Positions 30,882 through 59,052 of a stretch of DNA of 64,000 bases are shown here, piece by piece. The notes beneath the pieces were generated by a model that saw nothing but the letters and a program-made list of their open reading frames with translations, was not told the origin of the DNA and ran no database searches. Position 1 is the first letter of the stretch, and each line of letters opens with the position of its first letter. The translations under genes were made by a program, and so were the position numbers. Origin of the DNA: Octopus sinensis (lineage: Eukaryota); contig NC_043021.1 in assembly GCF_006345805.1 (NCBI RefSeq), positions 11,966,001 through 12,030,000 of the forward strand, written 5' to 3'.

Positions 30882-31071
30882 ATGAGTTCTGAAATTACAA
30901 AGCTGAACATCATCACTTACCTTGTTCCTGATGTAAAGGTGGAGGCATTTCAGGTTTTTACCGAATACCTTGAAGATGTGGCTAACGTTCGCTGCAACTT
31001 GATCTACGAAACCCGATGGCAGTATCCGACGAGCAAAAGAGACCTGTTTGATCTAGGAGATGTTGATATGG
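30882..31071 (+). CDS. PhnD/PtxB-like substrate-binding protein, coding exon 1 (MSSEITKLNIITYLVPDVKVEAFQVFTEYLEDVANVRCNLIYETRWQYPTSKRDLFDLGDVDM+g)
   Basis: Polypyrimidine tract and cccag acceptor ending at 30875; ATG at 30882; donor g|gttagt at 31072 (phase 1). The pattern 'ITYLxP..E.F....EYLE.......LIYE.RW......D.F..GDVD' resembles the N-terminal lobe of PhnD/SsuA/transferrin-fold binding proteins. Confidence 0.88.
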
Positions 31072-31599
31072 GTTAGTAATTTTTTTTCTTTTTTTCAACC
31101 TTTTCAAGCCTAGCCAGGCTCAAAGGCCCGGTTTCTGTGGCGTATATGTTCCCCTTCAGCTGGATGGGACGCCAGTCCATCGCAGCGTCACCCAAGAAAC
31201 AGGAAGAGAGAGTGAGAGAAAGTTGGGGCAAAGGAGTACAACAGGGGTCGCCACCACTCCTTGCTGGAGTCTCGTGGAGCTTTTAGGTGTTTTCGCTCTA
31301 TAAACACACACAACACCCGGTCTGGGAATTGAAACCGCAATCCTCCGACCGCGAGTCTGCTGTCCTAACTACTGGGTCATTGCGCCTCCATGGGTTAGTA
31401 ATAGTAATAGCTTTTTATCTCTTGATTTGAATGGTCATCATTGTTGTTGATGTCTTGCCACGGATCAGCTTTCTTTGTTTAACCCTTCAGCATTCAGATT
31501 ACTCTCTCAATAGTGATGCTTATTTATTCACATTGATATGAATCAGTCATGCCTTACTTTGTAGCTTTGAGATTTTGATGACATGATTGTTTGTTTTTA

Positions 31600-32165
31600 T
31601 TGGGTTGTCCGGAAAGTTTGTGCCGATTTATAGTAGCTTACCTTTCGACTTATTTTAGAACCTGGTTGAGTCCATAAAACAGAATTTGACTGCACCTCCA
31701 TTTAAAGCACAGTTTAAGCTATCTTTTCGTGGAAGAAGGTTTATGTTCCTATAACTTGTGTTAATTCTGTAACCCTTTAAAATGGAAGATAAGAAAGTTC
31801 ATTTTCGGCACTTGATGCTTTGGGAACCAGAAAAAAATTGCTGCAGCTCGGCTGGGATGTGTTACCCCACCCTCCATATTCACCAGATATTGCTCCTTTG
31901 GATTTCCACTTATTCAGGTCTCTGCAGAATAGTCTTAATGGTAAAAATTTCAAATCCGTGGATGATGTAAAAAGATACCTTGATGAATTCTTTGCCATGA
32001 AACCACCCCAATTCTGGGAAGAGGGTATTTTCAAGTTAAAGGAAAGATGGAGATGCATTGTGCAACAAAATGGTTCATATTTGGTTGATTAAAAATGTAA
32101 TGGCAAGTATTTATTGACCTTTTTCTTCCCTTTAAAAATCGGCACAAACTTTCTGGACAACCCAA
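31600..32165 (+). mobile_element. Internally deleted mariner element (566 bp)
   Basis: TA target duplication on both sides; 30-bp TIRs ttgggttgtcc[g/a]gaaagtttgtgccgattt (1 mismatch); MEDKKVHFRHLMLW N-terminus joined to ...GWDVLPHPPYSPDIAPLDFHLFRSLQN... C-terminus containing the YSPD motif. Confidence 0.97.
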
Positions 32166-32327
32166 TAGAATATTATTGTAGAGTAAGTGTGAGACATGTC
32201 CAATATGTTCACCGTCATCACTTCAGTGCAGGGAAAGTTCACCATAAGGAATGTTCACTGCGAGGAAAGTTCACCGCAAGGAAAATTTATGGAGAAATAA
32301 GTTTACAGTAACAAAATAAAAGAACCT

Positions 32328-32721
32328 AGTTAAGTTCCAGATTCAGTAATATTGTAAATAAAGGGTTCAACATTGGTTCAATGTCAGCGTGTGCATATAA
32401 GAATTTTTTGTGTAATAAGATAAAAAGCCAAGGCTGTATAGATATTATAGCATTTATAGATAGGTCTTACAGCTGTTTCTAGGATATTTATTAATAATAT
32501 CCCTTCATCAGACTTAGCTATCCTCTCACACTGTCTCTGATGAAGGGATATTATTAATTAATATCCTAGAAACAGCTGTAAGACATTCTATCTATAAATG
32601 CTCTAACTATACAGCCTTGGTTTTTTATTTTATTACGCAAAAAATTCTTATATACACACGCTGACATAGAACCAACGTTTAACCCTTTATTCGCAATATT
32701 ACCGAGTCTGGCATTTAACTA
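32328..32721. repeat. Long palindrome of Penelope-like ends (arms of about 185 bp, 23-bp loop)
   Basis: 32328-32512 is the reverse complement of 32536-32721, moderately diverged; the ctgatgaaggg...cctagaaacagctg motif is typical of Penelope-like terminal repeats. Confidence 0.85.
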
Positions 32722-33986
32722 TGGTCTGTCTATAGCACTTATTCAGCATTGCCTGACACCTTTGGAAAATATAAGAACTTTATTTTTGAACTCCTGAAGT
32801 TCACAGTGAATTGATGGCGGTGAACTCTACTGCGATGAATTGATGGCGGTGAACTTACCTGTAATTAATGTGAGAGGCCAGATTTGTCCAGTTTGGAGAT
32901 AAAACAGATTATTTTGGCTGGATAAGGCCAGTCTAAATGCTAAAGGGTTAATTATCATCATCATAATTTAACGTTTCCTTTTTCTATGCTGTCATGGGTT
33001 GGACAGTTTGAGATGAACTGATGGACCAGTTCTGGCCATAAGAAATCTGCCTCCATAAATATCTGTCTGACCCATGCAAGCATACATCCACAAACATGTC
33101 TGACTATTGGGGAAGATATTAGCCTTGCTTGGAAACAGAGGAGGGTTGGCCACAGGAAGGGCTTCTGACCATGGGAAATCTGCCTCAATGAATATCTGTC
33201 TGACCCATGCAAACATAGAAAAGTAGACATTATAACAATGATGATGCTATATTTGACCTTACTCTCTTTTACTCTTTTACTTGTTTCGGTCATTTGACTG
33301 CGGCCATGCTGGAGCACCGTCTTTAGTCGAGGAAATCGACCCCCAGGACTTATTCTTTGTAAGCCTACCACTTATTCTATCGGTCTCTTTTGCCGAACCG
33401 CTAAGTTACGGGGACGTAAACACACCAACATCAATTGACAAGCGATGTTGGGGGGACAAACACAGACACACAAACACACACACATATATATACATATATA
33501 CAACAGGCTTCTTTCAGTTTCCGTCTACCAAATCCACTCACAAGGCTTTGGTCGGCCCGAGGCTATAGTAGAAGACACTTGCCCAAGGTGCCACGCAGTG
33601 GGACTGAACCCGGAACCATGTGGTTGGTAAGCAAGCTACTTACCACACAGCCACTCCCGCGCCTTCTGGAAATAGTAACCAAATTTCCCTCAGATCCACA
33701 TTCTACTGTCTTTAGAAAAAAAAAATGTATCTGGGTGGCACATTAGATAATGTAGTCATAGATGGACAATGTCTCTGAAATAAAAGATTGGATGGTCACA
33801 GTTACAACACCGTGGTTTGCTGGATCAGAGCTGATCCCTGGTTAAGTAACAACAACATTTAGAGCTCCCTGTGTTCTGGTCCTCTGAGCCTCTCGGACAC
33901 TTGTAGGCCAAGACAGTGACCAAAACTTTCACAAACAACCCCTTCAGTATTGTTTGATTTCTTTTCATTCCTTGGTCTCTCGCCAG

Positions 33987-34131
33987 GCTTTATCAGTGCT
34001 CCAGGATTTCTCGAAATGTTAGAGAGACCAAACTCAATAGAGCTATGTCCTGTTGCTCCTGTCTATACTCACCCTCATGGAAGAGGCCGACCTGTGATTT
34101 TCTCCGATGTTGTAGTACGAAACGAGCTTGG
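33987..34131 (+). CDS. PhnD-like protein, coding exon 2 (G-FISAPGFLEMLERPNSIELCPVAPVYTHPHGRGRPVIFSDVVVRNEL-gg)
   Basis: Acceptor ctctcgccag at 33986, donor gg|gtatgt at 34132. The phase 1 start fits exon 1 exactly. 'GRPVIFSDVVV' corresponds to the 'xYxSxxIV' strand of PhnD-type proteins. Confidence 0.9.
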
Positions 34132-35384
34132 GTATGTATTCATTCATTCATTTTCTTTACACTCTGCCCCCACCCCTATCTGTCCTTCTCCTTTCAGCCC
34201 TTCTCTCTTCCTTTCTCTTCCCCCTCTCTCCCCTCTTTTCTCTCCTCCTTCCATGGCCGGGTCTCTTTTTTTTTAAACACAGCATCTTCCTATTTGTTGT
34301 GTTCCCTTATCATTTTGATTGCAAGGCTCAGCACCCTGACATCAGCCTTCACCATTCTTGCCTGTGTCTTCCTTCCTTGGTTTTCTTCCATTTGAATTTC
34401 CTGGCACTCCCTATGTTCTACACCACCATCCATGCATATTAAATGCTTGAAACCAACAAAGCTGTCTCCCTTGCAGTCTTGTACCTTATTCCTCCCATTT
34501 AATGAGTCATGTCACACACATACACACACACAAATCAGGCTTCTTTCAGTTTCTATTTACCATATCTGCTCACAAAGATCTGTTCAGCTCAACGTATCAC
34601 GTAGTAGGACTGAACCTGGAACCATATGGCTGCAAAGCATGCTTGTTTAAGCATAGCTATGCCGGCACGCATGCACACACACACACACACACACACCCAA
34701 ATCATGCTTCTTTCAGCAAATCGACCCCAGGACTTATTCTTTGTAAGCCTAGTACTTATTCTATCGGTCCTTTTCGCCGAACCGCTAAGTTACGGGGACA
34801 TAAACACACCATATTCGTTTGTCAAGCAATAGACAAACATAGACACACAAACGTATACACACACAAACACACACATATATACAACAGGCTTCTTTCAGTT
34901 TCCATCTACCAAATCCACTCAAGGCTTTGGTCAGCCCAAGGCTATAATAGAAGACACTCGTCCAAGGTGCCATGCAGTGGGAATGAACCCGGAATCATGT
35001 GGTTGGTAAGCAAGCTACTTACCACACAGCCACTCCTGCGTTTGTAGTATACTTTGAAAAGCAATCGTCTATTTTAGAAAGAGTAGGAACTTTCTTTTAA
35101 TGATAATTAACAGGTGTGGCTGTGTGGTAAGAAGCTTGCTTCCCAAGGACATGTTTTCGGGTTCACTCCCATTGCATAACGCCTTGGGCAAGTGTCTTCT
35201 ACTATTGCCTCGGGCTGGCCAAAGCCTTGTGATTGGATTTGGTAGATGGAAACTGAAAGAAGCCTGTTGTATCTATGTATGCACATATCTGTGTCTTTGT
35301 GTTTGTGATCATCTGCCACCACCACCTCCACTACTTGACAACAAGTGCTGTAGTGTTTACGTCCCTGTAACTTAGCCTGTCTGG

Positions 35385-35593
35385 CCCTTGTGCCGGTGGC
35401 ATGTAAAAACACCTACTACACTCTTGGAGTGGTTGGCGTTAGGAAGGGCATCCAGCTGTAGAAATTCTGCCAGATCAAGATTGGAGCCTGGTGCAGCCAT
35501 CTGGTTCACCAGTCCTCAGTCAAATCATCCAACCCATGCTAGCATGGAAAGCGGACGTTAAACGATGGTGATGATGATGATGATGACGATGAT
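35385..35593 (+). mobile_element. SINE-like family D (ggttggcgttaggaagggcatccagctg ... acgttaaacgatgatg tail)
   Basis: Other copies at about 40795-40980(-), 41980-42170(+), 46110-46430(+), 46630-47175(-, with about 60-bp internal subrepeats), 60146-60600(-), 61760-61915(+), 62620-62700(+), 12370-12445(-). Confidence 0.8.
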
Positions 35594-35758
35594 GAATTTA
35601 GTTATCATTAAGCTAGAGTTAGGAACATAAATTGTTACTAAGGTTTGGTGGAAGATTTTAATTCAAGACTTATGAAAACAAGACATTTGCACTCAGAACC
35701 AGAGCTGGTTTCAGCTGGGTTGGTATCAAAAGGGTTAAAAATATCATGGTGATGTTAA

Positions 35759-35978
35759 CTCTTTTGTTACCATATTTCTGTTCAGATGCTCTGTGTTTCT
35801 TTCCATAAATTTTAAATATAACAAAAGATTTAGTAAAATAACTTTGTTATCATTAAGCTAGTGTTAGGAACATAAATTGTGACTAAGGTTTGGTGGAAGA
35901 TTTTAATTCAAAACTTAAGAAAACAAGACATTTGTACTACAGAACCAGAGCCGGTTTCAGCTGGGTTGGCAACAAAAA
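35759..35978. mobile_element. piggyBac-like MITE, preceded by a partial copy (about 35600-35734)
   Basis: ttaa|ctcttttgttacc ... ggcaacaaaaagg|ttaa; its 3' about 135 bp is duplicated immediately upstream. Confidence 0.65.
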
Positions 35979-36606
35979 GGTTAAACTGTTTGGGGTCTTT
36001 GGGTTAGCAGAAGCAACTCTTCATCTTTTGGTTCAAGCAACTCTCCAGCTGTTGGTCGTGGTCATTGTGACACATTTTCGCATGGTGTTGGTGGTGGTGG
36101 AAGATGGTGTTGATGGTGTATGTTATAATGTTGGTCATAGTCACCATGTGAAGGCGCATGGCTCGGTGGTTAGAGCGTCGAGCTTACGATCGTGAGGTTG
36201 TGAGCTCGAATCCCTGACCGGGCTGCGTGTTGTGTTCTTGAGCAAGGTACTTTATTTCACGTTGCTCCAGTTCACTCAGCTGTAGAAATGAGTTGTGACG
36301 TCACTGGTGCCAAGCTGTATCGACATTTGTCTTTCCCTTGGATAACACTGGTGGCATGGAGAGGGGAGGCTGGTATGCATGGGCGACTGCTGGTCTTCCA
36401 TAAACAACCTCACCCTGACTTGTCTAGGAGGGTAACTTTCTAGGTGCAATCCCATGGTCTGTGTCGTGACCGAAGGGGGTCTCCGAGTCACCATGATGCA
36501 TTCATTGCTAGAAACTTCCTTTATTTCCCTTTTCTTTCCTTTTCTACTTTTGTTTTCTTTTTCATCTTCCAAATGATCTCATTTTTATTTGCTTTTCTTC
36601 ATCTAG

Positions 36607-36752
36607 CGGCGACTATAACGAGTTTGAGCGCCTGAAGGGACACAAGTTTACTTACTCTCATCCAGAGTCTACGACTGGCTACTCTATTATGCTCTCTGAG
36701 CTGAAGAACCATAACACAGACTCCAGCTTTTTTGCTGATACGATCCAATCTG
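36607..36752 (+). CDS. PhnD-like protein, coding exon 3 (G-GDYNEFERLKGHKFTYSHPESTTGYSIMLSELKNHNTDSSFFADTIQS-g)
   Basis: Acceptor ttttcttcatctag at 36606, donor g|gtaatt at 36753; phases 2/1 fit both neighbours. 'LKG..F.Y....STTG' matches the 'DLKGK.FAF.DP.STSG' oxyanion-binding motif of PhnD/PtxB. Not in the ORF track (no start codon, under 60 aa). Confidence 0.92.
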
Positions 36753-37936
36753 GTAATTTTCTATCTTTGATTTGACGTAATGAATCTTTCAAACTTCCTT
36801 GCCAACCCTTTTCTGCCCTTATTTCCCTATCCTTTCTTTTATGATCACCTTTTATCTTGAGGATGATAAATAAATCAATAACAAATGCACAATTTGTAAC
36901 AGTCCAAAACATGATTATAATAGGGTGAAAAAAAAAAGTGATAAAATATTGACAATTGACAAGTCCCTTAACCCCTTGGGGGTTGTTGGGGTGCTGCAGC
37001 TATGTAGCATATCTAGGGCAAGAAAACCAAACAGAGCCCATCCCTCTCTAGGCTAAACTCATTTCTATCGCTGAGTGGACTGGAACAATATGAAATGAAG
37101 TGTTTTGCTCAAGAACACAACAGATCGCCTGGTCCGGGATTGAAACCACAATCTTGCGATCATGAATGCAACGCCCTAACCACTAAGCAACACATCTCCA
37201 CTAGTGGTACTCATTTCTACAGCCGATTGGACTGAAGCAACATGAGATGAAGTGCTTTGCTCAAGAATACAATGTATTGCTCGGTCCAGGGACTGAAACC
37301 ACAATCTTCCAATCATGAGTCCAACACCCTAATCACTAAGCCACGTGCCTCCATGGTAAAATATTAGCTTCTTGAAAATACTTAGTACCTGTCTAACTTT
37401 ATTCGAACTTCACCAATCACTGTGAGGAATGTGGGAGGTTTTTCTGCCACATCCAATATTAGCTTTTACTTGTTTCAGTCATTTGACTGTGGCCATGCTG
37501 GGGCACTGCATTGAAGGGTTTTAGTCAAACAAATCGACCCCCAGGAGTTATTTTTTTTTAAACCTGATACTTATTCTATCAGTCACTTTTGCTGAACTGC
37601 TAAGTTACAGGGATGTAAACACACCAACACCAGTTGTTTGCTGAACTGCTAAGTTACAGGGATGTAAACACACCAACACCAGTTGTCAAGCAGTTGTGGG
37701 AGACACACAAAGACACGCACACATCTCTTCTTCAGCAAGACACTGATTCCTGTTCTTTATCATACTTTCACCTCCTTTAATACTAAACTCCACTAAGTTG
37801 AGGGGTGTTGTCTTGCAAGTACTTGATGACCTCACCAGGCTTTTTTTTTTTTTTGATGTTTGCTTCTTTTGCAGATTTCCATGACCCTCTGTCACCATCC
37901 ATTTCCATCATTATGAATTTGAATTGGAAGCTTGAG

Positions 37937-38748
37937 CCATAATGAATCTTTCATTAGCTGATTTACACAATGATAGAAACCACCCCTCTGGATTCTGTGT
38001 TGAATCATTTGAGTTCTTCCACAACCTCTTGAAACTGGAGTCATAATGAATCTTTCATTGGCTGATTACACAACGATAGAAACCACCCCTCTGGATTCTG
38101 TGTTGAATCATTTGAGTTCTTCCACAACCTCTTGAAACTGGAGTCATAATGAATCTTTCATTGGCTGATTACACAACGATAGAAACCACCCCTCTGGATT
38201 CTGTGTTGAATCATTTGAGTTCTTCCACAACCTCTTGAAACTGGAGTCATAATGAATCTTTCATTGGCTGATTACACAACGATAGAAACCACCCCTCTGG
38301 ATTCTGTGTTGAATCATTTGAGTTCTTCCACAACCTCTTGAAACTGGAGTCATAATGAATCTTTCATTGGCTGATTACACAACGATAGAACCACCCCTCT
38401 GGATTCTGTGTTGAATCATTTGAGTTCTTCCACAACCTCTTGAAACTGGAGTCATAATGAATTTCATTGGCTGATTACACAACGATAGAAACCACCCCTC
38501 TGGATTCTGTGTTGAATCATTTGAGTTCTTCCACAACCTCTTGAAACTGAAGTCATAATGAATCTTTCATTGGCTGATTACACAACGATAGAAACCACCC
38601 CTCTGGATTCTGTGTTGAATCATTTGAGTTCTTCCACAACCTCTTGAAACTGGAGTCATAATGAATCTTTCATTGGCTGATTACACAACGATAGAAACCA
38701 CCCCTCTGGATTCTGTGTTGAATCATTTGAGTTCTTCCACAACCTCTT
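37937..38748. repeat. 103-bp satellite x about 8 (intron 3 of the PhnD-like gene)
   Basis: Unit starts at 37937, 38040, 38143, 38246 and onward; units near-identical. Confidence 0.97.
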
Positions 38749-41215
38749 CCCAATCTGCCAAGCAGCTTTCACAGACTCTCATGACTCTGCCACTATCCAA
38801 TTCCATTATTACAAATTTGAATTGGGAACTTGTGTCATAGTAAGTCTTTCATTAGCTGATCATACAACGATGGGCACCATGGGTGATCCTGACCGCTGAC
38901 CTTCTAGGATTCCTCTGCTCAGCATCAATGTAAGAAGCACTGTTGTATCGAGTTCTTCCACCACCTCTTCCCAATCTGCCATGCAGCTTTCACAGACTCC
39001 CATAACTCTGCCACTATCCAATTCCATTATTACAAATTTGAATTGGGAACTTGTGTCATAGTAAGTCTTTCATTAGCTGATCATACAACGATGGGCACCA
39101 TGGGTGATCCTGACCGCTGACCTTCTAGGATTCCTCTGCTCAGCATCAATGTAAGAAGCACTGTTGTGTCGAGTTCTTCCACAACCTCTTCCCAATCTGC
39201 CAAGCAGCTTTCACAGACTCTCATGACTCTGCCACTATCCAATTCCATTATTACAAATTTGAATTGGGAACTTGTGTCATAGTAAGTCTTTCATTAGCTG
39301 ATCATACAACGATGGGCACCATGGGTGATCTGACCGCTGACCTTCTAGGATTCCTCTGCTCAGCAATCAATGTAAGAAGCACTGTTGTATCGAGTTCTTC
39401 CACCACCTCTTCCCATCTGCCATGCATCTGTCACAGACTCCCATGACTCTGCCACTATCCAATTCCATTATTACAAATTTGAATTGGGAACTTGTGTCAC
39501 AGTAAGTCTTTCATTAGCTGATCATACAACGATGGGCACCATGGTGATCCTGACCGTTGACCTTCTAGGATTCCTCTGCTCAGCATCATCATGTAAGAAG
39601 CACTGTTGTATCGAGTTCTTCCCACCTTTTCCCAATTGCCATGCATCTGTCACAGACTCCCATGACTCTGCCACTATCCAATTCCATTATTACAAATTGA
39701 ATTGGGAACTTGTGTCATAGTAAGTCTTTCATTAGCTGATCATACAACGATGGCACCATGGGTGATCCTGACCGCTGACCTTCTAGGATTCCTTGCTCAG
39801 CATCAATGTAAGAAGCACTGTTGTGTCGAGTTCTTCCACCACCTCTTCCCAATCTGCCATGCAGCTTTCACAGACTCCCATGACTCTGCCACTATCCAAT
39901 TCCATTATTACAAATTTGAATTGGGAACTTGTGTCATAGTAAGTCTTTCATTAGCTGATCATACAACGATGGGCACCATGGGTGATCCTGACCGTTGACC
40001 TTCTAGGATTCCTCTGCTCAGCATCAATGTAAGAAGCACTGTTGTATCGAGTTCTTCTACCACCTCTTCCCAATCTGCCATGCATCTGTCACAGACTCCC
40101 ATGACTCTGCCACTATCCAATTCCATTATTACAAATTTGAATTGGGAACTTGTGTCATAGTAAGTCTTTCATTAGCTGATCATACAACGATGGGCACCAT
40201 GGGTGATCCTGACCGCTGACCTTCTAGGATTCCCCTGCTCAGCATCAATGTAAGAAGCACTTTTGTATCGAGTTCTTCCACCACCTTTTCCCAATCTGCC
40301 AAGCAGCTTTCACAGACTCCCATGACTCTGCCATTATCCAATTCCATTATTACAAATTTGAATTGGGAACTTGTGTCATAGTAAGTCTTTCATTAGCTGA
40401 TCATACAACGATGGGCACCATGGGTGATCCTGACCGTTGACCTTCTAGGATTCCTCTGCTCAGCATCAATGTAAGAAGCACTGTTGTATCGAGTTCTTCC
40501 ACCACCTCTTCCCAATCTGCCATGCAGCTTTCACAGATTCCCATGACTCTGCCATTATCCAATTCCATCATTACGAATCTGAATGGGAAGCTTCAGTCAT
40601 AATGAATCTTTCATCAGCTGATTACACAACCATGGATGCCATCCCTATGGATGCTTTGCAGTTACTCTCTTGATGTGGTTTGGTGTTCCTGACCATTGAT
40701 CTTCTGGGATTCCTCTGCTCGGCATCAATGTAAGAAGCAGCATTGGCTCATTTGAGCTCTTCTGCTACCTCTTCACAATCTGCCATGCTGCTTTCATCAT
40801 CATCATCATCATCATCATCATCGTTTAGTGTCCGCTTTCCATGGGTTGGACGGTTCAACTGGGGTCCGGGAAGCCAGAAGGCTGCACCAGGCCCAGTCTG
40901 ATCTGGCAATGTTTCTACGGCTGGATGCCCTTCCTAACACCATGCCCTTCCTAATGCCAGGGTGCCCTTCCTAACGCCACCATGCACTCCTCCATTATTA
41001 CAAATTTGAATTGGGAGCTTGTGTTATAGTTCATCTTTCATTAGCTGACTACACAACCATAGATGCATTACAGTTACTCTCATGATAGAGCCTTGGTGAT
41101 CCTGATCATTGATCTTCTGGGATTCCTCTGCTCAGCATCAATGTAAGAAACTCTGTCGGCTCAGTTGAGCTTCTCTGCTGCCTCTTCACAATCTGTCCTA
41201 TGACTTCCACTGCAT
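38749..41215. repeat. 221-bp satellite x8 plus older, longer diverged monomers interrupted by a family-D SINE
   Basis: cccaatctgcc unit starts at 38749, 38970, 39191, 39412, 39631, 39848, 40069, 40290 and 40511; diverged monomers at 40511-40794 and 40981-41215. Confidence 0.95.
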
Positions 41216-43959
41216 CCCTAGCAGGGTGGCTAAACAGGTGCTATGCTTTGCCAAAGGGCAGTCTGTAACAATGCAGGGCACGGCTGTCACTCTGTGAGGT
41301 ATTTTCGAAGTGTCTGCATAGGCGCAGGAGTGGATGTGTGGTAAGGAGCTGGCAGAAACATTAGCATGCCGGGCGAAATGCTTAGCGGTATTTCGTCTGT
41401 CGCTACATTCTGAGTTCAAATTCTGCCGAGGTCAACTTTGCCTTTCATCTTTTCGGGGTCGATTAAATAAGTACCAGTTACACACTGGGGTTCATATAAA
41501 TGACTTAATCCATATGTCTGTCCTTGTTTGTCCCCTCTGTGTGTAGCCCCTTGTGGGCAGTAAATAAATAAGAAACTTGCTTCCTAACCACATGGTTCTG
41601 GGTTCAGTCCCACTGCGTGACACCTTGGGCAAGTGTCTTCTGTTATAGCCTCAGGCCGACCAAAGCCTTGTGAGTGGATTTGGTAAGTGGAAACTGAAAG
41701 AAGGCTGTCGTGTATATGTAAATATATATATATATATATATATGCATATATGTGTGTGTTTGGGTGTCTGTGTTTGTGCCCCCCCCCACATCGCTTGACA
41801 ACCAATGCTGGTGTGTTTATGTCCCTGTAACTTAGCAGTTTGGCAAAAGATAGAATAAGTACTAGGCTTACAACGAATAAATCCTGGGGTCAATTTGTTC
41901 AACTAAAGGTGCTGCTCCAGCATGGCCACAGTCAAAATGACCAAAACAAGTAAAAGAACAAAAGAATACCAAAATACCAGTGCTAATACCACATAAAAGC
42001 ACTGAGTATACTCTCTGTAAAATGGTTGGCATTTGGAAGGGCATTCAGCTGTAAAAGCCATGCCAAAGCAGACATTAGACCTCACAACAGACAGACCTCT
42101 GACTCATTGGTTTCTGTCCAATCCATGCCAGCATGGAAAACTGCCATTTAAAACTGATGATAGTGATGACGGATCTTTATATAGCCATTGTTCATATGAT
42201 ATGTAATCTCTGTGGTCAAATCTACAGGCTGTTGGCCCACTGGCTGAAAGGTGGCTGGTGGTCTGTCTATATTTGGATGTGTGTTTTATGTCTATAGCCA
42301 GCCAAGGCTATTAATGCTGATTGACTCACTAAAACACATGCCAAAAGGAACACTGTGTAATTACTCTCTGAGCTCAAATATTTTCATTGGTGAGCCATCT
42401 TAACTTCTTAATATGTTATTAATGTTTGTAAGGAGGCAAGCGGGCAGAATCATTAGCACAGTGGGCAAAGTGCTTAGTGGTATTTCACCCACTTTTACAT
42501 TCTGAGTTCAAATTCTGTCGAAGTTGACTTTGCCTTTCAATCTTTTGGGATCGATAAAATAAGTAGCAGTTGAGTACTGAGGCTGATGTAATCAACTTAC
42601 CCCTCCCCCGAAATTGCTGGCCTTGTGTCAAAATTTGAAACCAGTTTGTTATTGGTATTTGTAAGGTGGTGAGCTGGCAAAATACTTAGAGCGGTATTTC
42701 ACCTGACTTTATGTTCTGAGTTCAAATTCTACCAAGGTCAGCTTTGTCTCTCAACCTTTCACAGTTGATAAAATAAGTACCAGTTATGCACTGGGGTCAA
42801 TGCTATCAACTCACTCCCTCTCCTAAAATTGCTGGCCTTGTACCAAGATTTGAAATCAGTATGTTACTAGTGCTTTAGGCTGGTAAATGAAGCTGGAATG
42901 ATGATGATGATGCATTGAAGGAATGAAGGAAAAAAAATTAATTATGAAGATGGTTCTTTATTTAGATGATTATAATGTCGTTATAAATATAAAATAAATG
43001 ACGTTTTGTGCAGTAAAATAATTTCTAGTTCCATAAACTCTTTGCATGTGGGAGCTAGCTTCATTGTCTGTCGCTAGAGAGAGAGAAAAGATGAGATTTG
43101 TACAGACAAACTGAAGGTATAAGCAGTGTGTTGTCCCTCTCTTTTTCCATTCCCTGGTGGGATCCTCACTTAAGGCAGCAACCAAAGAGAATGACCAACC
43201 CTTTTGCTGGGTTAGGTAAAGTTTGGCAACTAAAGTAGGTCAACTTAAAACAAAGGATTGACCTCTCTGTGACCAGGTCAACTCAGCCTCATTAATCTCC
43301 AAGTGCAGAAAGGAAAAAAAAAACAATATTTATCTGACAATTAACAAAAATGTGGGTTTAGTTTTGAATCCTCTTAACTGCAGTAGGTGGTCTTTAGATA
43401 TATATGTACATATATACATATATATGCAGCTACATATGTGTGCATGTGTGTGTGTGTGTGTGTATGTAATAAATATATATCGTTTACTCTTTTACTTGTT
43501 TCAGTCATTTGACTGTGGCCATGCTGGAGCACCACCTTTAAGTCGAGCAAATCGACCCCAGGACTTATTCTTTGTAAGCCTAGTACTTATTCTATCGGTC
43601 TTTTTTGCCAAACCGCTAAGTTACGGTGACGTAAACACACCAGCATCGGTTGTCAAGCGATGTTGGGGAGACAAACATATACACATAATACATATATATA
43701 CATATATACGACGTGCTCCTTTCAGTTTCCGTCTACCAAATCCACACTTGTGGTGTCCTGTACCCATATATGCATGTATATATACATATAAAGAGAAAGT
43801 TTACGAAAAAGACGAAGGCAGGTGGAGTACAAACAAACGAATGTATTAGTATAGCACTCAGGAATAGAAAAAGTACATACCTACATCTATATATACATAT
43901 AGATGTAGGTATGTACATATATGTATGTATGTATGCATATGTTTTATTTATTAAATTGT

Positions 43960-50642: not shown

Positions 50643-50822
50643 GGTCTCATTTGAATTCCCTACATCTACTTCTGACGAAGAGGGCTGACGTTGCTACTAT
50701 TGATTCCCGGTTCCTCACTGACTTTTTCAGCCAACATCCTCACTACAAGAAAGAGCTCAAAGTGATGACCACTCTTGGTCCCATGCCGGTTAACCCGTTA
50801 GTATTTAGGAAAACATTACCTT
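50643..50822 (+). CDS. PhnD-like protein, coding exon 4 (G-SHLNSLHLLLTKRADVATIDSRFLTDFFSQHPHYKKELKVMTTLGPMPVNPLVFRKTLP-t)
   Basis: Acceptor tttaactttcag at 50642, donor t|gtaagt at 50823; phases 1/1. 'GSH..S...L....ADVA' and 'MPVNPLVFR' match the 'G.H......V..G..D.A' and 'IP.DP.V.R' segments of PhnD-type proteins. Confidence 0.92.
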
Positions 50823-52113
50823 GTAAGTGATTTTTCTTTTTTCATGTTCAAATTATTTTGTAAATCTTGCAAAAAAAAAAATAATAATACATGTCGCCCT
50901 TTTCAAGCCTAGCCAGGCTCATGGGCCCAGTTTCCCGGTTTCTGTGGCATATGTGTTCCCCACAGCTGGACAGGACGCCAGTCCATAGCAGCATTACTCA
51001 AGAAACAGGAAGAGAGAGTGAGAGAAAGTTGGGGCAAAAGAGTACAACAGGAGTCGCCACAACCCCCTGCCGGAGCCTCGTGGATCTTTTAGGTGTTTTT
51101 GTTCCATAAGTACACGCAACACCCGGTCTGGGAATCAAAACCACGATCCTTCAACTGCAAGTTCCCCACAGCTGGATGGGACGTCAGTTCATAGCAGCAT
51201 TACTCAAGAAACAGGAAGAGAGAGTGAGAGAAAGTTGGGGCAAAAGAGTACAACAGGGGTCGCCACCACCCCCTGCCGGAGCCTCGTGGATCTTTTAGGT
51301 GTTTTTGCTCCATAAGTACACACAACGCCCGGTCTGGGAATCGAAACCATGATCCTCCAACCGCAAGTCCACTGCCCTAACCACTGGGCCGTTGCGCCTC
51401 CACTTACAAGGCAAACAAAATGATTTTTTTGTATAAAGGAAGGAGACAGGACCTGTCTTATGAAGAACGAATACATACATAGGTGGATTAGAGATATTTG
51501 ACAGGATGAGAGCTATTCAGCAGAACAAGAGCTATTTGACAGGATGATAGCTATTTGACTGGATAATATCAAGAGGGTTTCATAAGTTTTTTTCATTCAG
51601 AAGTTATCTGTGAATCTGGGGAAAAAATTTGTCTGAATTTCTTGGAAGCTGTTATTGTTTAACCCCAGGACAAATCTGATCAAGCAGTCTTAAGCTCAAA
51701 AAACATTCCAGCTATGACCATTCCATCTTCTTTTTTTTTTTATAAACAAAAATTCTGAGTTGAAATTTTGAGGCTGATTTGGCTGCTATTTCTAGCTGAC
51801 CAAGCAATGATGTCAAGACCTGTTGCTGGATCCATAGATTGATGAAAGCATTGTTTGTTTTGAATTCATTATATCAATAACTTCAGTCATTGGTAACATC
51901 CTACCCCCTGGCTTATTTATTTATTTATCTATTCTTTAATAAGATGCTTGCTATGTGGCTGTTAATTGCATTAATGGCTCTCTAGAACTAATGGATCAGT
52001 TGTACGTTGGGGAAACCGGCGTCTAGGATGTGGGACAAAGAAAATCAGGGAACTACTGCCGCTACTGCTTCTACTACTAAGTAACCAAGTTATCACCACC
52101 ACCACCACCATAT

Positions 52114-52189
<76 letters not shown>

Positions 52190-52409
52190 CTTTTCTAATC
52201 TAGGCACAAGGCCCAAAATTTTGGGGGAGGGGGGCCAGTCGATAAGATCTACCCCAGTATGCAACTGGTTATCGACCCGAAAGGATGAAGGGCAAAGTCG
52301 ACCTCGGCGGAATTTGAACTCAGAATATAAAGACACACGAAATACTGCTAAGCATTTCGCCCGGTGTGCTAACGATTCTGCCAGCTCGTCGCCTTAATAA
52401 TAATAATGA

Positions 52410-52443
<34 letters not shown>

Positions 52444-52967
52444 GGTGGTGGTGGTGGTGGTGGTGGTGGTGGTGGTGGTGGTGATGATGATGATGATGAT
52501 TGCCCTGATGCAGTACCAGGCAGTGGCTCTCATGGCTTTTGATCTTAACTGATTGGAAGTGTTATCATGTACTGGACCCCACCTACAAAGTCATACACAG
52601 TTAATCTTGATATGAGATCACCATGTTGTGCACATATGGTTGTCATGTATGTGCCTGATGTACCCTTATCAGAAAGGTAGTCATGATGGGTATACTGGTC
52701 TTTGTATATTTTACCCCAGTGTCACTTTGGTAGCATGCACTGCTCTCTCACTCAACAACAACAACAATAATAATAATAATAATCCTTTCTACTGAAAGCA
52801 CAAGGCCTCAAATTTGGGGGAAGGGATTAAGTCAATTACATCGACCCAGCATGTAACTGGTACTTATTTAATTGACCCCAAAAGGATGAAAGACAAAGTT
52901 GACCTTGGCAGAATTTGAACTCAGAATGTAGCGATGAGCATGCTAACGATTCTGCCAGCTTGCTGCC

Positions 52968-53002
<35 letters not shown>

Positions 53003-53985
53003 TTCATTTATTTGCCATAAAGGTGAAGGATGATGGGGACAATACAAAGACACATAAAATGTGGGGGTTTACATATAATGAAATGATTAAAAAAAGGAAA
53101 GAGAGAGAGAAATTAAGTACACACGGTATACACTGAAAAAGAAGGGATATATGCATAGCATACAAAGGTTTAAAAAAAGTGGCAGGGAGGATGATAGAGA
53201 TGTGGCCCTCTTGATACAGGAAGGCCTTTAGGGATAACCGAAGAACCCCACTGTCTGAGATTTCCCTAAAACCCCAGAGCAAGTGCCCTCTCCAATTCCG
53301 TTTCTCTGACTCATAGGTCTTCACTTAGAGATGTGACCCTCCTGATACAGAAAGGCCTCTAGGGATGATCGAGGAACCCCACTGTCCGAGATTTCCCCGA
53401 AACCCCAAGAGCAGATGCCTTCTCCAACTCCTTCTCTCAGACTCACAGGTCTACACTTAGAGAAGTACCATCCACTCTTGCCATTTTCGCAGCTTTCACC
53501 CACCTTTCAATAAACTCACTCAAGCACAGCACTTCCCTCTTCCCTCTCAATTTCCTTTACAAGTGAAACTTGAAGAAGTCAATGAGAGCTCTACGAAAGA
53601 GGAATGTATCTGTCCTCATGCTTTTCAGCCTTGTCCACCAAACAACTCCTTTTGTCACAGCCACCAGGCAAAGGAAAACTGCCTTGCCTACCCGACTGAA
53701 AGAAGGTGGTGGTGCGATCATCGCTACAGACTCAGTCGACAGACGGATCCGTCCCTCACATGACAGCAGTGTTGTTCGACATAACCCCACAAGTCAGCAA
53801 TACCCGGACACTGAACAAAGGCATGTAGAAGGGTTTCATCACTCTGCACGCACCTTGGACAAGCCCGTCTGACAGCACATCCGTGCCTGTAGTGTTTCTC
53901 CGGAACCGGTAGCACTGCCAGGCCAAGAACATCCAGAAATTATCAAAGATAGTTCCCGACCAGGATCTCCTCTGGAGGCATAAGG
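53003..53985 (-). mobile_element. 5'-truncated Tx1/L1-clade LINE (zf-RVT domain, C-terminus and 3' UTR with a 131-bp tandem duplication)
   Basis: LPV..K.YRHG...CPRC.QSDETLLHAFVQCP.IADLW (CCHC zf-RVT) and a downstream frame ending VVWWTRLK..; the 3' end abuts (TAA)n at about 52968-53002. Confidence 0.88.
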
Positions 53986-54159
53986 TCTGAAATTGTGGGG
54001 GAGGTGGGGGGGTTAGTCGATTACATCGACCCCAAGTTCGTAACTGGTACTTATTTCATCAACCCCGAAAGGATGAAAGGCAGAGTCGACCTCGGTGGAA
54101 TTTGAATTTGGAATGTAAAGCTGGAAGAAATGCTACTAACAATTCTGCCAGCTCACCAC

Positions 54160-54216
54160 CTCACTCCTTCTCCTCCTCCTCCTCTTCCTACTACTACTAC
54201 TACTACTACTACTACA

Positions 54217-54248
<32 letters not shown>

Positions 54249-54512
54249 AAGTTATTACTGCATCTACAATTACTGCTAGCTTGCTACTACTAGTTGCTTA
54301 CTGCTGCTGCTACTACAATTGCTACTGCTGCTGATGCTACTACTACTACTACTACTGCTACTGCTGTTACTACTACTACTACTACTAGTATTACTGCTGC
54401 TGCTACTACTGCTGCTACTGATACTACTACTACTACTACTACTGCTATTACTGCTGCTGCTGCTGCTACTACTACTACTACTACTACTAGTATTACTACT
54501 GCTGCTGCTGCA
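54160..54512. repeat. Compound trinucleotide tract (CTC/CTA/CTG)
   Basis: Directly visible; source of the poly-S/T/L/V ORFs. Confidence 0.97.
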
Positions 54513-55132
54513 AGTGGCAACAAAAGCTTTCCCCCTCACCCCCGCTCTCTCCATCCAGATAAAAACGAGTTACTCAATGTCTGCTGTTATAGTTGCCGGA
54601 ATGTAGAAGGATCCACAGAGGAACAAAGTTATTTGCAGTGCATTGTTGGGTGGGCTAGGGTGGGGGAAGGGGGGAGGGGAGGAGGAGGAGGATTTAATTT
54701 AGAAGAAAGCTTGATTGTTTGTGTGCATTGCATGAGCGGTTAAGTACGGAAGGAATTGGCTGACGACCAGTCGATGTCTGAAGACGGGACATCCAAAGAC
54801 AGATGGACGGACAGACCCTGTTACATTGTGTGATGCGATTTTTGTCCTTGGGGAGCGACTGTTATCTCCTGTTTGCTTATCCTTAGAAAGTATGAAAAAG
54901 GGTTAATGTTTCCTTCAAACTTTGCTTTTGTTCTGATATTTAATTCGAATCCCAAAGAAACCCTCTCGACACCTGGTTGTGATGCTCCCCCCCCCCCACT
55001 ACTCTCCTGCTCATGATCAGAGGTGCACATATTGTCGGCCACCAAGGGACATGCTGAAGTTGTTACGGTCAAACAACTGAAAAGCAAATCTGTGGTATTG
55101 AGTAGAATATTTGCTATAATATTTCTTCTTTA

Positions 55133-55722
55133 AGGCGTCGAGCTGGCAGAAACGTTAGCACGCCGGGCGAAAAGCTTAGCGGTATTTCGTCTGCCGTTAC
55201 GTTCTGAGTTCAAATTCCACTGAGGTCGACTTTGCCTTTCATCCTTTCGGGGTCGATAAATTAAGTACCAGTTACGCACTGGGGTCAATGTAATCGACTT
55301 AATCCGTTTGTCTGTCCTTGTTTGTCCTCTCTGTGTTTAGCCCCTTGTGGGTAGTAAAGAAATAGGTATTTCGTCTGCCGTTACGTTCTAAGTTCAAATT
55401 CCGCCGAGGTCGACTTTGCCTTTCATCCTTTCGGGGTCGATAAATTAAGTACCAGTTACGCACTGGGGGGTCAATGTAATCGACTTAATCCGTTTATCTG
55501 TCCTTGTTTGTCCTCTCTGTGTTTAGCCCCTTGTGGGTAGTAAAGAAATAGGTATTTCGTCTACCTTTATGTTCTGAGTTCAAATTCCGCTGAGGTCGAC
55601 TTTGCCTTTCATTCTTTCGGGGTCGATAAATTAAGTACCAGTTACGCACTGGGGATCGATGTAATCGACTTAATACCTTTGTCTGTCCCTTCTATGTGTA
55701 GCCCCTTGTTGGCAATAAAGGA
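55133..55722 (+). mobile_element. SINE family A with three tandem bodies
   Basis: One head, then ggtatttcg body starts at 55181, 55365 and 55551 (184/186-bp period). Confidence 0.92.
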
Positions 55723-55839
55723 ATAGATATTTCTTCTTCAGCAGCTCAATATTGAATCTGTTTGAAACGCAATGATCCGTTTCTATGATGGTATCTTGGT
55801 TAGCTTGTGAACTTTTCAGCTGACACTCATACTTTGTAC

Positions 55840-55959
55840 TTTGATCAAAAGAGTCAGCAGCAGCAGCAGATATGGCATCATCATCACTGCAATACTGGTT
55901 CCCAGCCAAATGTTTTTTCATGTCGGGGCACAGATGATAGTCAGTTGGGGCCAAATCAA
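55840..55959 (-). mobile_element. Mariner transposase fragment
   Basis: LDLAPTDYHLCPDMKKHLAGNQYCSDDD matches 'PDLAPSDYHLF..MKK.L.G..Y.SD'. Confidence 0.8.
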
Positions 55960-57892
55960 GATGCTCCCCCACTACTCCTGCTCATGATCAGAGGTGCACA
56001 TATTGTCGGCTACCAAGGGACATGCTGAAGTTGTTACGGTCAAGCAACTGAAAAGCAAATCTGTAGTATTGAGTAGAATATTTGCTATAATATTTCTTCT
56101 TTAAGGCGGCGAGCTGGCAGAAACGTTAGTGCCTCGGGCGAAATGCTGATCAACCAGTTCAAAGTCAGTCATGCACAGCAGCCATTAAAACCATGGACTT
56201 TCTGGACTATACTCGAAAATTTACTGTATACCAATAATAATTGGGTGCTCTTGGTCTTGTAATTAAATAACTTACTGTCAGTCTGGATAAGCTTGGATTA
56301 TCAGAAAAAAAAAAATCAACCAGGTGATTTGCACATTACAAATTCAGTCTGTAAGTAGAACAGTAAAACTATGCAAGGCTTTTCTCAGGTTTAAAATGTG
56401 ACATTGTTTACATGGACTAAATTCCAACGATGGAGCTTTGTATCTTTGTCAGAAACCAGCTCCTTGTTTGAAAGAGGAATTTAAATAGTTAAATTCAGAA
56501 AAGAACATACATGTGTGTGTGTGTGTGTGTACAAGTAGATGTGTGAGTGTTACTGTTATGCTTATTAGAGCTCCACGTAGACTTTCACAATTCAGTCTGG
56601 TTTGTATGGAGTTGTTGGGTAACTTTTACACCAAGTAGTATTACCAGTTATGAACTACAGAGCAAATGTAGGTGAAATAAGGATAAGTACAGTTTTGTGT
56701 AATACTTCCTACACAGATTCCACCATTATGTGTGTCTATGTATGTATGTATGTATGTATGTATGTATGTATGTATGTATCTATCTATCTATCTATCTATC
56801 TACCTACCTACCTGTCTACTGAACTACCTCCCTCCTTCCCTCCCTCATTTTCTCCCTTCCTTCCTTCCTCCCTCCTTCCCTTTCTTTCTCCTTTCCTTTT
56901 TTGCAGCTTTCTGTTTAGAGGCCTACAAAACTTGAAGTAGCATGACACTGAATCAAATTGTTTTAAATAATACATGTAACTCCCACTAAATGTGTTGAAT
57001 ATCATTGTTTGTCAGACGAGAATCATCGGCTACAGATGCCGGAACTACCAGATCATGTGGTTTCACCCTGGTTAAGACTCCTCAGTGGCACACATTCATT
57101 AGCTATGAAACAGCTGAATCTCACAGTTCAATACTGCTTCTTTTGCTATCAAATGTGAAGGCACATGGCTCAGTGGTTAGTGTGTTGGGCTCACAATCAT
57201 GAGGTAATGAGTTCGATTCCCAGACCCGGCTATGTGTTGTGTTTTTGAGCAAGACACTTTATTTCATGTTGCTGCTGTTCACTCAGCTGTAGGAACAAGT
57301 TGCGACATCACTGGTACCAAGCTGTATCGGCCCCTTTGCCTTTCCCTTGGAGAACATCAGTGGCATGGAGAGGGGAGGCTGGTATGCATGGGAGATTGCT
57401 GGTCTTCTATAAACAACCTTGCTCGGACTTGTGCCTCAGAGAACTTACTAGATGCAATCCGATAGTCATTCTTGACCGAAGGGGATCTTTACTCTTTTTA
57501 CTGCTATTATTTTTTAAATAAGCCTGCTGGCTATTTGCAACATCGGTGCCTGAAAATACAGTGAAATTCTATATATCATTGACAGTGAGCTTTGGCTGAT
57601 ATGTCACTACCAGACGCCTACCACTGAAGAGACCATAGCAGGGTGAAATCAAGTGATCTGGTGATTGTAGCAGACGGCTCTCCTCTGTCAGTGATATAAA
57701 TATGAGTGCTTTTATGCACCATGACTTTGTATGAGTGGTTTTCTCTAGGTGTTTGTTGTTCTAACAGAACATTCACGTTAAGTGGGAGATAAAGATTGTC
57801 TTCTGGTATTAATACTATTTCTGTCACTATTAATTATATATGGGGGTGATATGTATGTGTGTATGTATATGTGTGTTGTGTGTGTGTATGTA

Positions 57893-58262
57893 TCTCTCTA
57901 TATATAAACGGCAGTTTGTCTGTGCGTGTTTCTGCGTGTCTGTTTGCTTGTACCCTCACCCTGACCACGGCTTTCAACCGATTCTGATGAAACTTGACAC
58001 ACACATAGCCCAATGTCATAATTCAAAACTAACGCAGCGAAAATTTTGAAAAGTTCCCCCAGTTCTGAAAAAAATCGATAAAATCGACATGGGGTCGAGA
58101 ATCAGAAACAAACCACAGACTGTCTAGGGGACGCAACTCAACCTTTTTTAACTCAAAAAAAAATTTACCATCATTTTTTGCTATTTTTTGGCTATAACTC
58201 TCTAAAAATGTTTTATAGTTATTTCCCTTACAAACCTGAGCAACGCCGGGCGATACTGCTAG
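57893..58262 (+). mobile_element. Non-autonomous Helitron
   Basis: A|TCtctctatatataaac ... gagcaacgccgggcgatactgCTAG|T. Confidence 0.9.
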
Positions 58263-58599
58263 TATATTTATATATGTGTGTATGCACGTATGTGTATAAG
58301 CATGTATGTGTGTGTATATTGTATGTGTTGTATACTTATGATGTGTGTATACTGTGTGTGTGTGTTTGTGTGTGTATGTGTTCTTATTTTTTAATTCTTT
58401 TACTTGTTTCGGTCATTTGACTGCAGCCATGCTGGAGCACCACCTTCAGTCAAACAAATCGACCCCAGGAATTATTCTTTGTAAGCCTAATACTTATTCT
58501 ATCGGTCTCTTTGGCCGAACCTCTAAGTTATGGGGGATGCAAACACCAGCATCAGTTGTCAAGCAATGGTGGGGGGGACAAACACAGGCACACACACAA

Positions 58600-58648
<49 letters not shown>

Positions 58649-58870
58649 TACATATATACGACAGGCTTCTTTCAGTTTCTGTCTACCAAATCCACTCACA
58701 AGGCTTTGGTCAGTCCGATGCTATAGTAGAAGACACTTGCCCAAGGTGCCACACAGTGGGACTGAACCCAGAACCATCTGGCTGGTAAGCAAGCTTCTTA
58801 CCACACAACCACTCCTCCACCTATATATATGTATGTATTTCAATTTTTTGTTTTTCGTTACTACTTTCAG

Positions 58871-59052
58871 CCGACGTGAAGAAAACCATAACGAAAGCCT
58901 TGTTAGAAATGCCTCAGAATCCTACTTGGAACCAAAAACTTCAAAATCTCCACATTGAAAATATGATAAGCATTGATTCGACTTTCTTCGATATGGAGAG
59001 GCTCTTACAAGAAAAAGTCAAAAATATACCATTAGTGCCGACCTATTATTAA
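58871..59052 (+). CDS. PhnD-like protein, terminal coding exon 5 (S-DVKKTITKALLEMPQNPTWNQKLQNLHIENMISIDSTFFDMERLLQEKVKNIPLVPTYY*)
   Basis: Acceptor ctactttcag at 58870; phase 1; TAA at 59050-59052. The exon lengths sum to 190+145+146+180+182 = 843 nt, i.e. 280 aa plus stop with no frameshift. 'DVKKTITKALLEM' fits the 'E.K.KI..ALL.M' helix of the family. Confidence 0.88.

Follow-up and report, generated by a model that had tools for sequence, protein, structure and literature searches.

A leaderless protein of the Phosphonate-bd family encoded by an intron-containing gene of Octopus sinensis, its animal homologues and its bacterial relatives

Phosphonate-bd-type binding proteins are known from textbooks as the extracytoplasmic parts of bacterial importers and sensors. 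We analysed a stretch of 64,000 nucleotides from Octopus sinensis (RefSeq assembly GCF_006345805.1, contig NC_043021.1, positions 11,966,001 to 12,030,000 of the forward strand; hereafter "the window", within which octopus positions are counted), which carries LOC115224559, a gene encoding a protein of this family that has no N-terminal leader. The existence of the octopus gene is already recorded in RefSeq and is therefore not new. What is added here is the recognition of a leaderless branch of the family in several bacterial phyla, of an animal gene that is older than the protostome-deuterostome split as judged by shared introns, of a Tyr-Tyr tail specific to animals, of changes in the predicted ligand pocket of octopods, and of a link between the bacterial sister clade and the egt and sen gene clusters.

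Gene structure of LOC115224559

An earlier note on the window had proposed a five-exon gene with GT-AG introns and an open reading frame of 280 residues. We enumerated all exon-length combinations compatible with the start at 30882, the stop at 59052, and the intron lengths proposed, keeping to GT-AG junctions throughout and to an uninterrupted frame. The five-exon solution was unique among them and reproduced the proposal to the base, including the intron lengths, the intron phases (1, 2, 1, 1) and the reading frame. The spliced product, encoded on the plus strand, comprises 280 residues followed by a stop codon. Donors of the four introns read GTTAGT, GTATGT, GTAATT and GTAAGT, and at every acceptor a CAG or TAG comes after a polypyrimidine tract. 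The predicted protein is 100% identical to RefSeq XP_036369046, isoform X4 of the "uncharacterized protein" LOC115224559 of O. sinensis.

The exon coordinates thus proved exact, but the extent given to the gene was too short, since its "exon 1" is an internal exon. The ATG of isoform X4 (30882) lies six bases downstream of an acceptor site at 30876, to which the first coding exons of isoforms X1 and X2 are spliced (Table 1). Because these first coding exons lie upstream and splice into 30876, the gene spans at least positions 14217-59052; LOC115224559 thus extends over 45 kb or more and has at least six exons, including alternative first ones. The first exon of isoform X1 was found by tblastn with the N-terminus of XP_036369043 and its join to the acceptor was verified; the N-terminus that it encodes is Cys-rich and polybasic, and it is conserved in isoform X1 of O. 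bimaculoides as MPLCCKSCCRKDVAGKDGKKGKKT. Orthologues, present in four octopod genomes, include CAI9740806 of O. vulgaris, LOC106874892 of O. bimaculoides (82% identity) and that of Argonauta hians (46%). No second gene was recognised within the 64-kb window.

Table 1. Coordinates of the coding exons of LOC115224559, of other features of the window and of a bacterial importer operon discussed in the text
Feature	Position	Strand	Remarks
Alternative first coding exon, isoform X1	14217..14288	+	MPLCKSCCRQDVAGKECKNGKKKT; donor GTAAGA, spliced to acceptor 30876
Alternative first coding exon, isoform X2	16885..16929	+	MIKSTQQDSNSDCLC; donor GTATGT, spliced to acceptor 30876
Internal exon	30876..31071	+	ATG of isoform X4 at 30882; encodes strand beta-1 (LNIITYLVPD) and helix 1
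Coding exon	33987..34131	+	Ser67 (33995-33997), Ile101 (34097-34099)
Coding exon	36607..36752	+	Predicted anion-binding loop S133-T-T-G136 (36668-36679)
Coding exon	50643..50822	+	His163 (50648-50650), Asp181 (50702-50704), Arg183 (50708-50710)
Last coding exon	58871..59052	+	C-terminal helices; Tyr-Tyr at 59044-59049; stop TAA at 59050-59052
46-bp satellite	1463-2067; 5080-5281		13 and 4.4 copies, respectively; outside coding exons
(AT)n tract, 496 bp	22092-22587		Outside coding exons
172-bp x 3 array	60927-61446		Outside coding exons
Rubrobacteraceae importer operon	5411-8816 of bacterial locus L008		Also in loci L015 and L005

Fold, family membership and nearest solved structures

The 280-residue octopus protein matched the Pfam profile PF12974 (Phosphonate-bd) with 100.9 bits against a cut-off of 27 (E = 9.6e-29). 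The match extends over residues 13-256 of 280 and profile positions 6-238 of 242, and so covers all five exons. Scores against curated models were below their cut-offs, namely 68.7 bits for TIGR03431 (PhnD; cut-off 261.1) and 76.6 bits for TIGR01098, the model of phosphate/phosphite/phosphonate ATP-binding cassette (ABC) transporter binding proteins (cut-off 112.05). The cut-off of 250 for TIGR04553 was not reached by the octopus protein (18.2 bits), its oyster homologue (36.6 bits) or the leaderless bacterial protein of locus L002 (31.8 bits).

Structure prediction was done with AlphaFold2 and an alignment of 125 sequences; a run with three octopod sequences alone gave a predicted local distance difference test score (pLDDT) of 36 and was discarded. 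The model obtained (pLDDT 92.2, predicted template-modelling score 0.86) has an alternating beta/alpha topology with two lobes. Its best Foldseek matches were ArrX (E = 4e-22, template-modelling score (TM) 0.79-0.83 by target length) and AioX, followed by PtxB, PhnD and HtxB, with a probability of 1.00 and TM by target of 0.77-0.85 to ArrX, AioX and PtxB. The sterol binder BstB and transferrin lobes appeared as distant matches. A profile of the family, compared with the sequences of the Protein Data Bank (PDB), gave E-values of 1e-40 for ArrX, 4e-32 for AioX, 3e-21 for PtxB and 5e-19 for PhnD.

The Pfam match, the AlphaFold2 model and the Foldseek results, the best of which are solved members of the family, agree with the earlier description of the locus as an animal gene with introns that encodes a stand-alone protein of Phosphonate-bd (PhnD/PtxB) fold, and the motifs quoted in its support (HPESTTGY, QSGSHLN, KRADVATID and GPMPVNPLVF) were all found. 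The assignment to a specifically PhnD/PtxB-like type, on the other hand, has to be dropped in view of the scores below the curated PhnD and TIGR01098 cut-offs and of ArrX and AioX as the nearest solved structures. The octopus protein is a member of PF12974 that stands outside the PhnD, TIGR01098 and ABC_peri_selen families and outside the clade of AioX/ArrX sensors, and its nearest characterised relatives are stand-alone oxyanion sensors rather than importer subunits. The literature searched contained no publication on the animal family, in line with the description of the protein as uncharacterised.

Inspection of the N-termini revealed no leader: in isoform X4, strand beta-1 is reached within eight residues of Met1, and the extensions of isoforms X1 and X2 are polar. 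Being leaderless, the octopus protein is presumably cytosolic. No genes for ABC partners (permease, ATPase) were recognised in the window, and the loci of other animals have unrelated neighbours.

Distribution and age of the animal family

An exhaustive profile search over 1.84 billion representative sequences returned 2,474 matches, 67 of them with E-values under 1e-30; together with cluster look-ups, it is the main source of the taxonomic breadth described here. Homologues were found in molluscs (gastropods, bivalves and octopods), an annelid (the leech Helobdella), insects (Timema and Lycorma), crustaceans (Artemia, Darwinula and Macrobrachium), chelicerates (one spider and one oribatid mite), one tardigrade and echinoderms (Asterias and Holothuria). 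A partial homologue occurs in assembly GCA_903632075, which we take to be that of a cuttlefish. Word-index protein searches, each yielding some 18 close homologues, did not extend the family to vertebrates or non-bilaterians, non-bilaterians and non-animal eukaryotes not having been specifically tested. A hydrophobic leader was present in none of the animal sequences, which start a few residues before the conserved LRxxTYLxPSxP strand.

In phylogenetic trees the 31 animal rows were monophyletic, with a support of 100 in FastTree (Shimodaira-Hasegawa-like) and 99 in IQ-TREE under LG+C20 (Shimodaira-Hasegawa-like approximate likelihood ratio test). The animal clade roughly follows the species phylogeny: echinoderms branch first in the rooted drawing, the arthropods form a group with support of 92, which is under the threshold used for starring nodes, and the lophotrochozoan group, containing the octopods, has a support of 96. 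The sister of the animal clade is a clade of leaderless bacterial proteins (joint support 97-99), with the classical binding proteins placed outside. Fragments of ArrX and AioX also fall outside the clade formed by animals and leaderless bacteria (support 99). No donor phylum could be named from these trees.

Exact gene models were rebuilt from the genomic loci of six other animals. In Argonauta, Crassostrea virginica, Aplysia and Asterias the four introns interrupt the coding sequence at the same alignment columns as in the octopus, in phases 1, 2, 1 and 1. The planthopper Lycorma has three identical introns and the third one two alignment columns away, and Helobdella is devoid of one of the four. 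As the positions and phases are common from octopus to sea star, the introns, and hence the gene, must predate the protostome-deuterostome split. Furthermore, a contig of 1,687 bp from run SRR14492780 contains an uninterrupted open reading frame of 281 residues for an oyster-type homologue; as four introns interrupt the gene in the genome of the related C. virginica, the contig is compatible with a spliced mRNA.

With homologues in several phyla, shared introns and a single animal clade, the earlier suggestion of an ancient family with a wide distribution among invertebrates is borne out. The family is neither octopus-specific nor the product of a recent transfer or of contamination, and an ancient horizontal transfer into a stem animal is possible as its simplest origin. 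Around the animal genes, no conserved synteny and no shared pathway gene were seen in the loci checked. In Asterias amurensis (locus L086, 14458-16596), an ABCB-type gene with ABC_membrane and ABC_tran domains is situated 3.9 kb downstream of the homologue, probably by coincidence, as such a gene is not found beside the homologue in the other animals checked.

Leaderless bacterial relatives and their gene neighbourhoods

Bacterial gene neighbourhoods were surveyed at 80 loci (numbered with the prefix L) from Rubrobacteraceae, other Actinomycetota, Planctomycetota, Acidobacteriota, Rokubacteria, Chloroflexota and Myxococcota. A hydrophobic N-terminal leader is rare among the nearest bacterial sequences, with very few carrying one, and the maximal open reading frame extensions of 50 bacterial relatives contained neither such a leader nor a lipobox. 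A conserved ABC importer context was absent: permeases accounted for four of the 100 immediate neighbours at 50 loci, all of them in one subclade of Rubrobacter. The leaderless bacterial proteins have the same length as the octopus protein, the same LRxxTYLxPSxP start and the same pocket, and are about 27-34% identical to it; they differ in keeping the pocket Cys (discussed below) and in having no C-terminal Tyr-Tyr tail.

The commonest neighbour across phyla was a protein with DinB_2 and FGE-sulfatase domains. Genes resembling EgtB and SenA, the synthases of ergothioneine and selenoneine, were directly adjacent to the leaderless gene in 18 of the 80 loci, as detected by tblastn, and by a rough estimate far fewer than 1% of loci would have such a synthase within 8 kb by chance. 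These occurrences derive from relatively few independent lineages, i.e. Rubrobacteraceae, another actinomycete, a Planctomycetota-type clade and locus L063. Curated models confirmed a complete selenoneine cluster at L002, with SenA (519.7 bits against a cut-off of 420), SenB (417 against 300) and SelD (323 against 125), and an EgtB at L036 (564.5 against 360). At L078, SenA and SenB are located downstream of the leaderless gene. In Planctomycetota, the leaderless gene and the synthase gene are co-directional and abut or overlap, with no EgtD nearby. At L063, the leaderless gene is followed by a SenA-SenB fusion of 676 residues (DinB_2, FGE-sulfatase and glycosyltransferase); the contig is titled as a metagenome-assembled genome of Klebsiella pneumoniae, and we suspect that it was mis-binned.

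The permease-linked subclade has an operon that encodes a complete PhnDCE-like importer, in the order LysR, classical Phosphonate-bd binding protein, ABC ATPase, permease and, as the last gene, the leaderless one (Table 1). The classical binding protein of this Rubrobacteraceae operon scores 253 bits with Phosphonate-bd, and the copy at L008 scores 202.7 bits with TIGR01098. Because the operon has a classical binding protein of its own, the leaderless protein would be an extra, intracellular paralogue and not the binding subunit of the importer. The operon at L005 adjoins SenA and SenB; at L008, a transposase of the IS4/5 type follows the leaderless gene. A second context, conserved in Rubrobacter (L021, L023, L025, L029 and L034), comprises in this order the genes for arginyl-tRNA synthetase, the leaderless Phosphonate-bd protein and a calcineurin-like phosphoesterase, with a 438-residue protein without a Pfam match, GlpX and Rho encoded downstream.

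A gene for a "putative selenate transporter" was noted near many sen clusters by Kayrouz et al., and a 2026 survey listed ABC_peri_selen and PhnE each in 3.1% of the neighbourhoods of these synthases. The leaderless clade is probably what the literature refers to as this putative transporter gene.

Predicted ligand pocket

The pocket of AioX is formed by Tyr88, Cys106, Tyr131, Ser161, Ser163, His192 and Asp210, of which the two Ser, the His and two Tyr are common to the pockets of AioX and PhnD (PMC5908839). According to the same study, Glu177 and Asp205 of E. coli PhnD, which contact the amine of 2-aminoethylphosphonate, correspond to Tyr212 and Pro240 of AioX. In our alignment, the octopus protein keeps four of the pocket columns as Ser133, Thr135, His163 and Asp181. 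Ser67 occupies the column of the arsenite-binding Cys106 of AioX and Ile101 that of Tyr131, and in the region of Tyr88 the octopus protein has an insertion, with Trp46 nearby. The columns of the PhnD acidic pair were mapped indirectly, through the AioX equivalences: that of Glu177 holds Arg183 in octopods and Asn in most members, and that of Asp205 holds Pro.

Among 29 animal rows, the first Ser, the Ser/Thr, the His and the Asp are each conserved in 27, and the Tyr in 22. The Cys column is variable in these rows (Ser in 16, Cys in six, Thr in four, Asn in two and His in one), and of the 89 leaderless bacterial rows, 87 retain the Cys and 83 the Tyr. Both the Cys and the Tyr are retained in the oyster and sea-star orthologues. 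Ile in place of Tyr and Arg in place of Asn are confined to octopods in the alignment. We read this pattern as a conserved anion site that would have been tuned by lineage. With the Tyr-to-Ile and Asn-to-Arg alterations of their pocket, octopods may bind a ligand different from that of other animals. A catalytic Cys/Ser-His-Asp triad was also considered as the principal explanation and is unlikely, the nucleophile column being occupied by Thr, Asn and His as well in animals.

A pair of C-terminal tyrosines, found in nearly all animal members (24 and 28 of 29), is carried on a short tail after the last helix, and no such tail was seen in any bacterial relative aligned. It could serve as a docking tail, a plug of the cleft or a sorting signal.

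Functional interpretation

The explanation that we favour, with somewhat more confidence than doubt, is that LOC115224559 encodes a cytosolic small-anion binder, sensor or chaperone, a soluble protein of about 280 residues with a type-II periplasmic-binding-protein (Venus-flytrap) fold. A small anionic ligand, for which tetrahedral oxyanions of P, As, Se or S and metabolites bearing a carboxylate are candidates, would bind in the cleft between the lobes, gripped by the Ser-x-Ser/Thr-Gly loop, the His and the Asp of a D-S motif. Closure of the lobes might then be read by a protein partner, or the protein might just buffer the ligand or pass it on; we propose a partner or buffer role for the octopus protein, which itself bears neither a transporter domain nor a kinase or catalytic one. 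The Cys-rich polybasic N-terminus of isoform X1 could act as a membrane tether through palmitoylation, and the ligand of octopods may have shifted. By analogy, the context of the sister clade, i.e. EgtB/SenA and the PhnDCE-like importer, suggests an ancestral job with S or Se species or a histidine betaine.

The closest parallels are ArrX of Chrysiogenes arsenatis and AioX of Rhizobium NT-26, periplasmic arsenate- and arsenite-binding sensors (PDB 6x6b, 6xl2, 6esk and 6eu7). They have in common with the octopus family the two-lobe fold and the pocket Ser-x-Ser, His and Asp; their pocket Tyr recurs in most family members and their Cys in the bacterial ones, and the octopus protein is likewise predicted to be a stand-alone binder, not a transporter subunit. 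In contrast, ArrX and AioX are exported and signal via an adjacent histidine kinase and response regulator, whereas the octopus protein has neither leader nor partner; it also carries Ser instead of the arsenite-binding Cys, Ile instead of one pocket Tyr and an extra animal-specific C-terminal tail ending in Tyr-Tyr, and its identity to them is about 22%. Genes for a sensor kinase or response regulator (XSR module) were absent from the surroundings of the animal genes and from the neighbours that recur at the 50 bacterial loci examined. Transferrin, a distant fold match (E ~1e-11, TM ~0.55 for its lobes), offers a precedent for a soluble animal protein of the type-II binding-protein fold that binds an anion, at a synergistic anion site, without a transporter. 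It differs in being secreted, duplicated and iron-binding, is unrelated in sequence and stands outside PF12974.

Several points weigh against a cytosolic anion binder. The pocket geometry was derived from sequence alignment to AioX and ArrX, and octopods are without two of the seven AioX residues (Cys to Ser and Tyr to Ile), so that anion binding is not guaranteed. The EgtB/SenA link concerns 22% of a redundant, Rubrobacter-rich sample and says nothing direct about animals, and arthropods, though carriers of the gene, are reported to lack the animal thiohistidine synthase OvoA. Palmitoylation of isoform X1 is proposed from a likeness of its N-terminus to N-terminal Cys-cluster motifs. Finally, an exact-sequence look-up for a transcript contig of isoform X4 gave no record, and the octopus gene rests on its RefSeq model and on conservation.

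Other explanations have to be set beside it. The earlier note had proposed a domesticated binding protein, which in the form considered here would be a PhnD/PtxB-type subunit of a prokaryotic ABC importer and would now bind a phosphonate, e.g. 2-aminoethylphosphonate, or phosphite in molluscs. PhnD, PtxB and HtxB, the binding subunits of phosphonate, phosphite and hypophosphite ABC importers, do belong to the same Pfam family, are significant fold matches (TM ~0.7-0.85) and present the same oxyanion contacts from Ser-x-Ser/Thr loop and His; in addition, molluscs make phosphonolipids. Nonetheless, we hold this explanation to be very unlikely. The octopus protein lacks a signal peptide as well as a permease or ATPase partner, it remains under the PhnD and TIGR01098 cut-offs, its family profile matches ArrX and AioX far better than PhnD, and the acidic pair with which PhnD holds the amine is replaced by Arg or Asn, and by Pro. 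Domestication of a periplasmic importer subunit is also at odds with a nearest bacterial clade that is itself leaderless and mostly outside ABC-transporter operons, and whose sole permease-linked Rubrobacter subclade has its own classical binding protein. The mollusc rationale fails as well, because the family is also found in insects, spiders, mites and a tardigrade, and a phosphonate ligand is left with no specific support. Contamination with bacterial DNA, a recent transfer, a dead pseudogene or a chance reading frame arising from repeats can be regarded as practically untenable: the family is overwhelmingly prokaryotic and the exons are small islands within 45 kb of repeats, but the gene has four spliceosomal introns with good consensus sites, at positions and in phases common to molluscs and an echinoderm and matched exactly in three cases by an arthropod, and the animal sequences are monophyletic in roughly the order of the species tree. 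Together with the orthologues of four octopod genomes, the uninterrupted oyster reading frame and the conserved pocket residues, these observations exclude contamination, recent transfer and a pseudogene.

That the protein is a component of a thio- or seleno-histidine pathway, handling hercynine, ergothioneine, ovothiol, selenoneine or an S/Se donor, or else an enzyme acting through the pocket Cys/Ser-His-Asp, is possible, if rather unlikely. It would account for the adjacency of EgtB or SenA in 18 of the 80 bacterial loci, including the Planctomycetota pairs without EgtD nearby and the L063 fusion, with SenA, SenB, SelD and EgtB over their curated cut-offs; carboxylates, moreover, fit such pockets, as ArrX crystals accept acetate and malonate according to their entry titles. 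Thiohistidines are known from the eggs of octopus and echinoderms. The remaining 62 loci, however, have no EgtB/SenA neighbour, the variable Cys column of animals suits a hydrogen-bond donor better than a catalytic nucleophile, and the animal loci show no conserved synteny to any pathway gene; the reported absence of OvoA from arthropods that carry the gene counts here too. A bolder proposal, to which we attach little probability, would see in these proteins a new intracellular Venus-flytrap class that captures S/Se species or a thio- or seleno-histidine betaine and exchanges it with synthases of the EgtB, SenA or OvoA type. If this were true, gene-bearing animals would have a dedicated cytosolic carrier or sensor for antioxidant chemistry, whose pocket would have been retuned in octopods.

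For the anion binder that we favour, the linkage of the bacterial genes to synthases and to a PhnDCE-like importer provides a concrete and cheap panel of ligands. Should a ligand be found, it would define a new step of intracellular small-molecule handling in invertebrates and shed light on an unexplained gene of the sen and egt clusters.

Repeats and transposon remnants in the window

The introns of LOC115224559 are full of tandem arrays and of an interspersed repeat of about 380 bp. In intron 3, at 37927-40635, two tandem arrays adjoin each other, one with a unit of 103 bp in 8 copies (98% matches) and one with a unit of 221 bp in 8.7 copies (95%), and give rise to repeated short open reading frames on both strands. 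The interspersed repeat produced 23 blastn matches of at least 80 bp with 76-92% identity, in both orientations and throughout the window, with copies at 15921-16309, 27403-27777, 28377-28738, 29061-29415, 30341-30703, 33281-33760, 34715-35040 and 41569-41949. It often adjoins TA/CA microsatellites and resembles a short interspersed nuclear element, and ARAGORN detected no tRNA-like structure in it. The satellite, the (AT)n tract and the array situated outside the coding exons are listed in Table 1.

Two open reading frames within introns are probably transposon remnants. The one at 31820-32092 (plus strand) in intron 1 contains PYSPDIAPLDFHLF, which resembles the C-terminus of mariner-type transposases, although Pfam gave no match for the suspected remnant. 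The one at 53724-53915 (minus strand) in intron 4 scores 25.4 bits, just under the cut-off, with zf-RVT, the zinc-binding region of reverse transcriptases.

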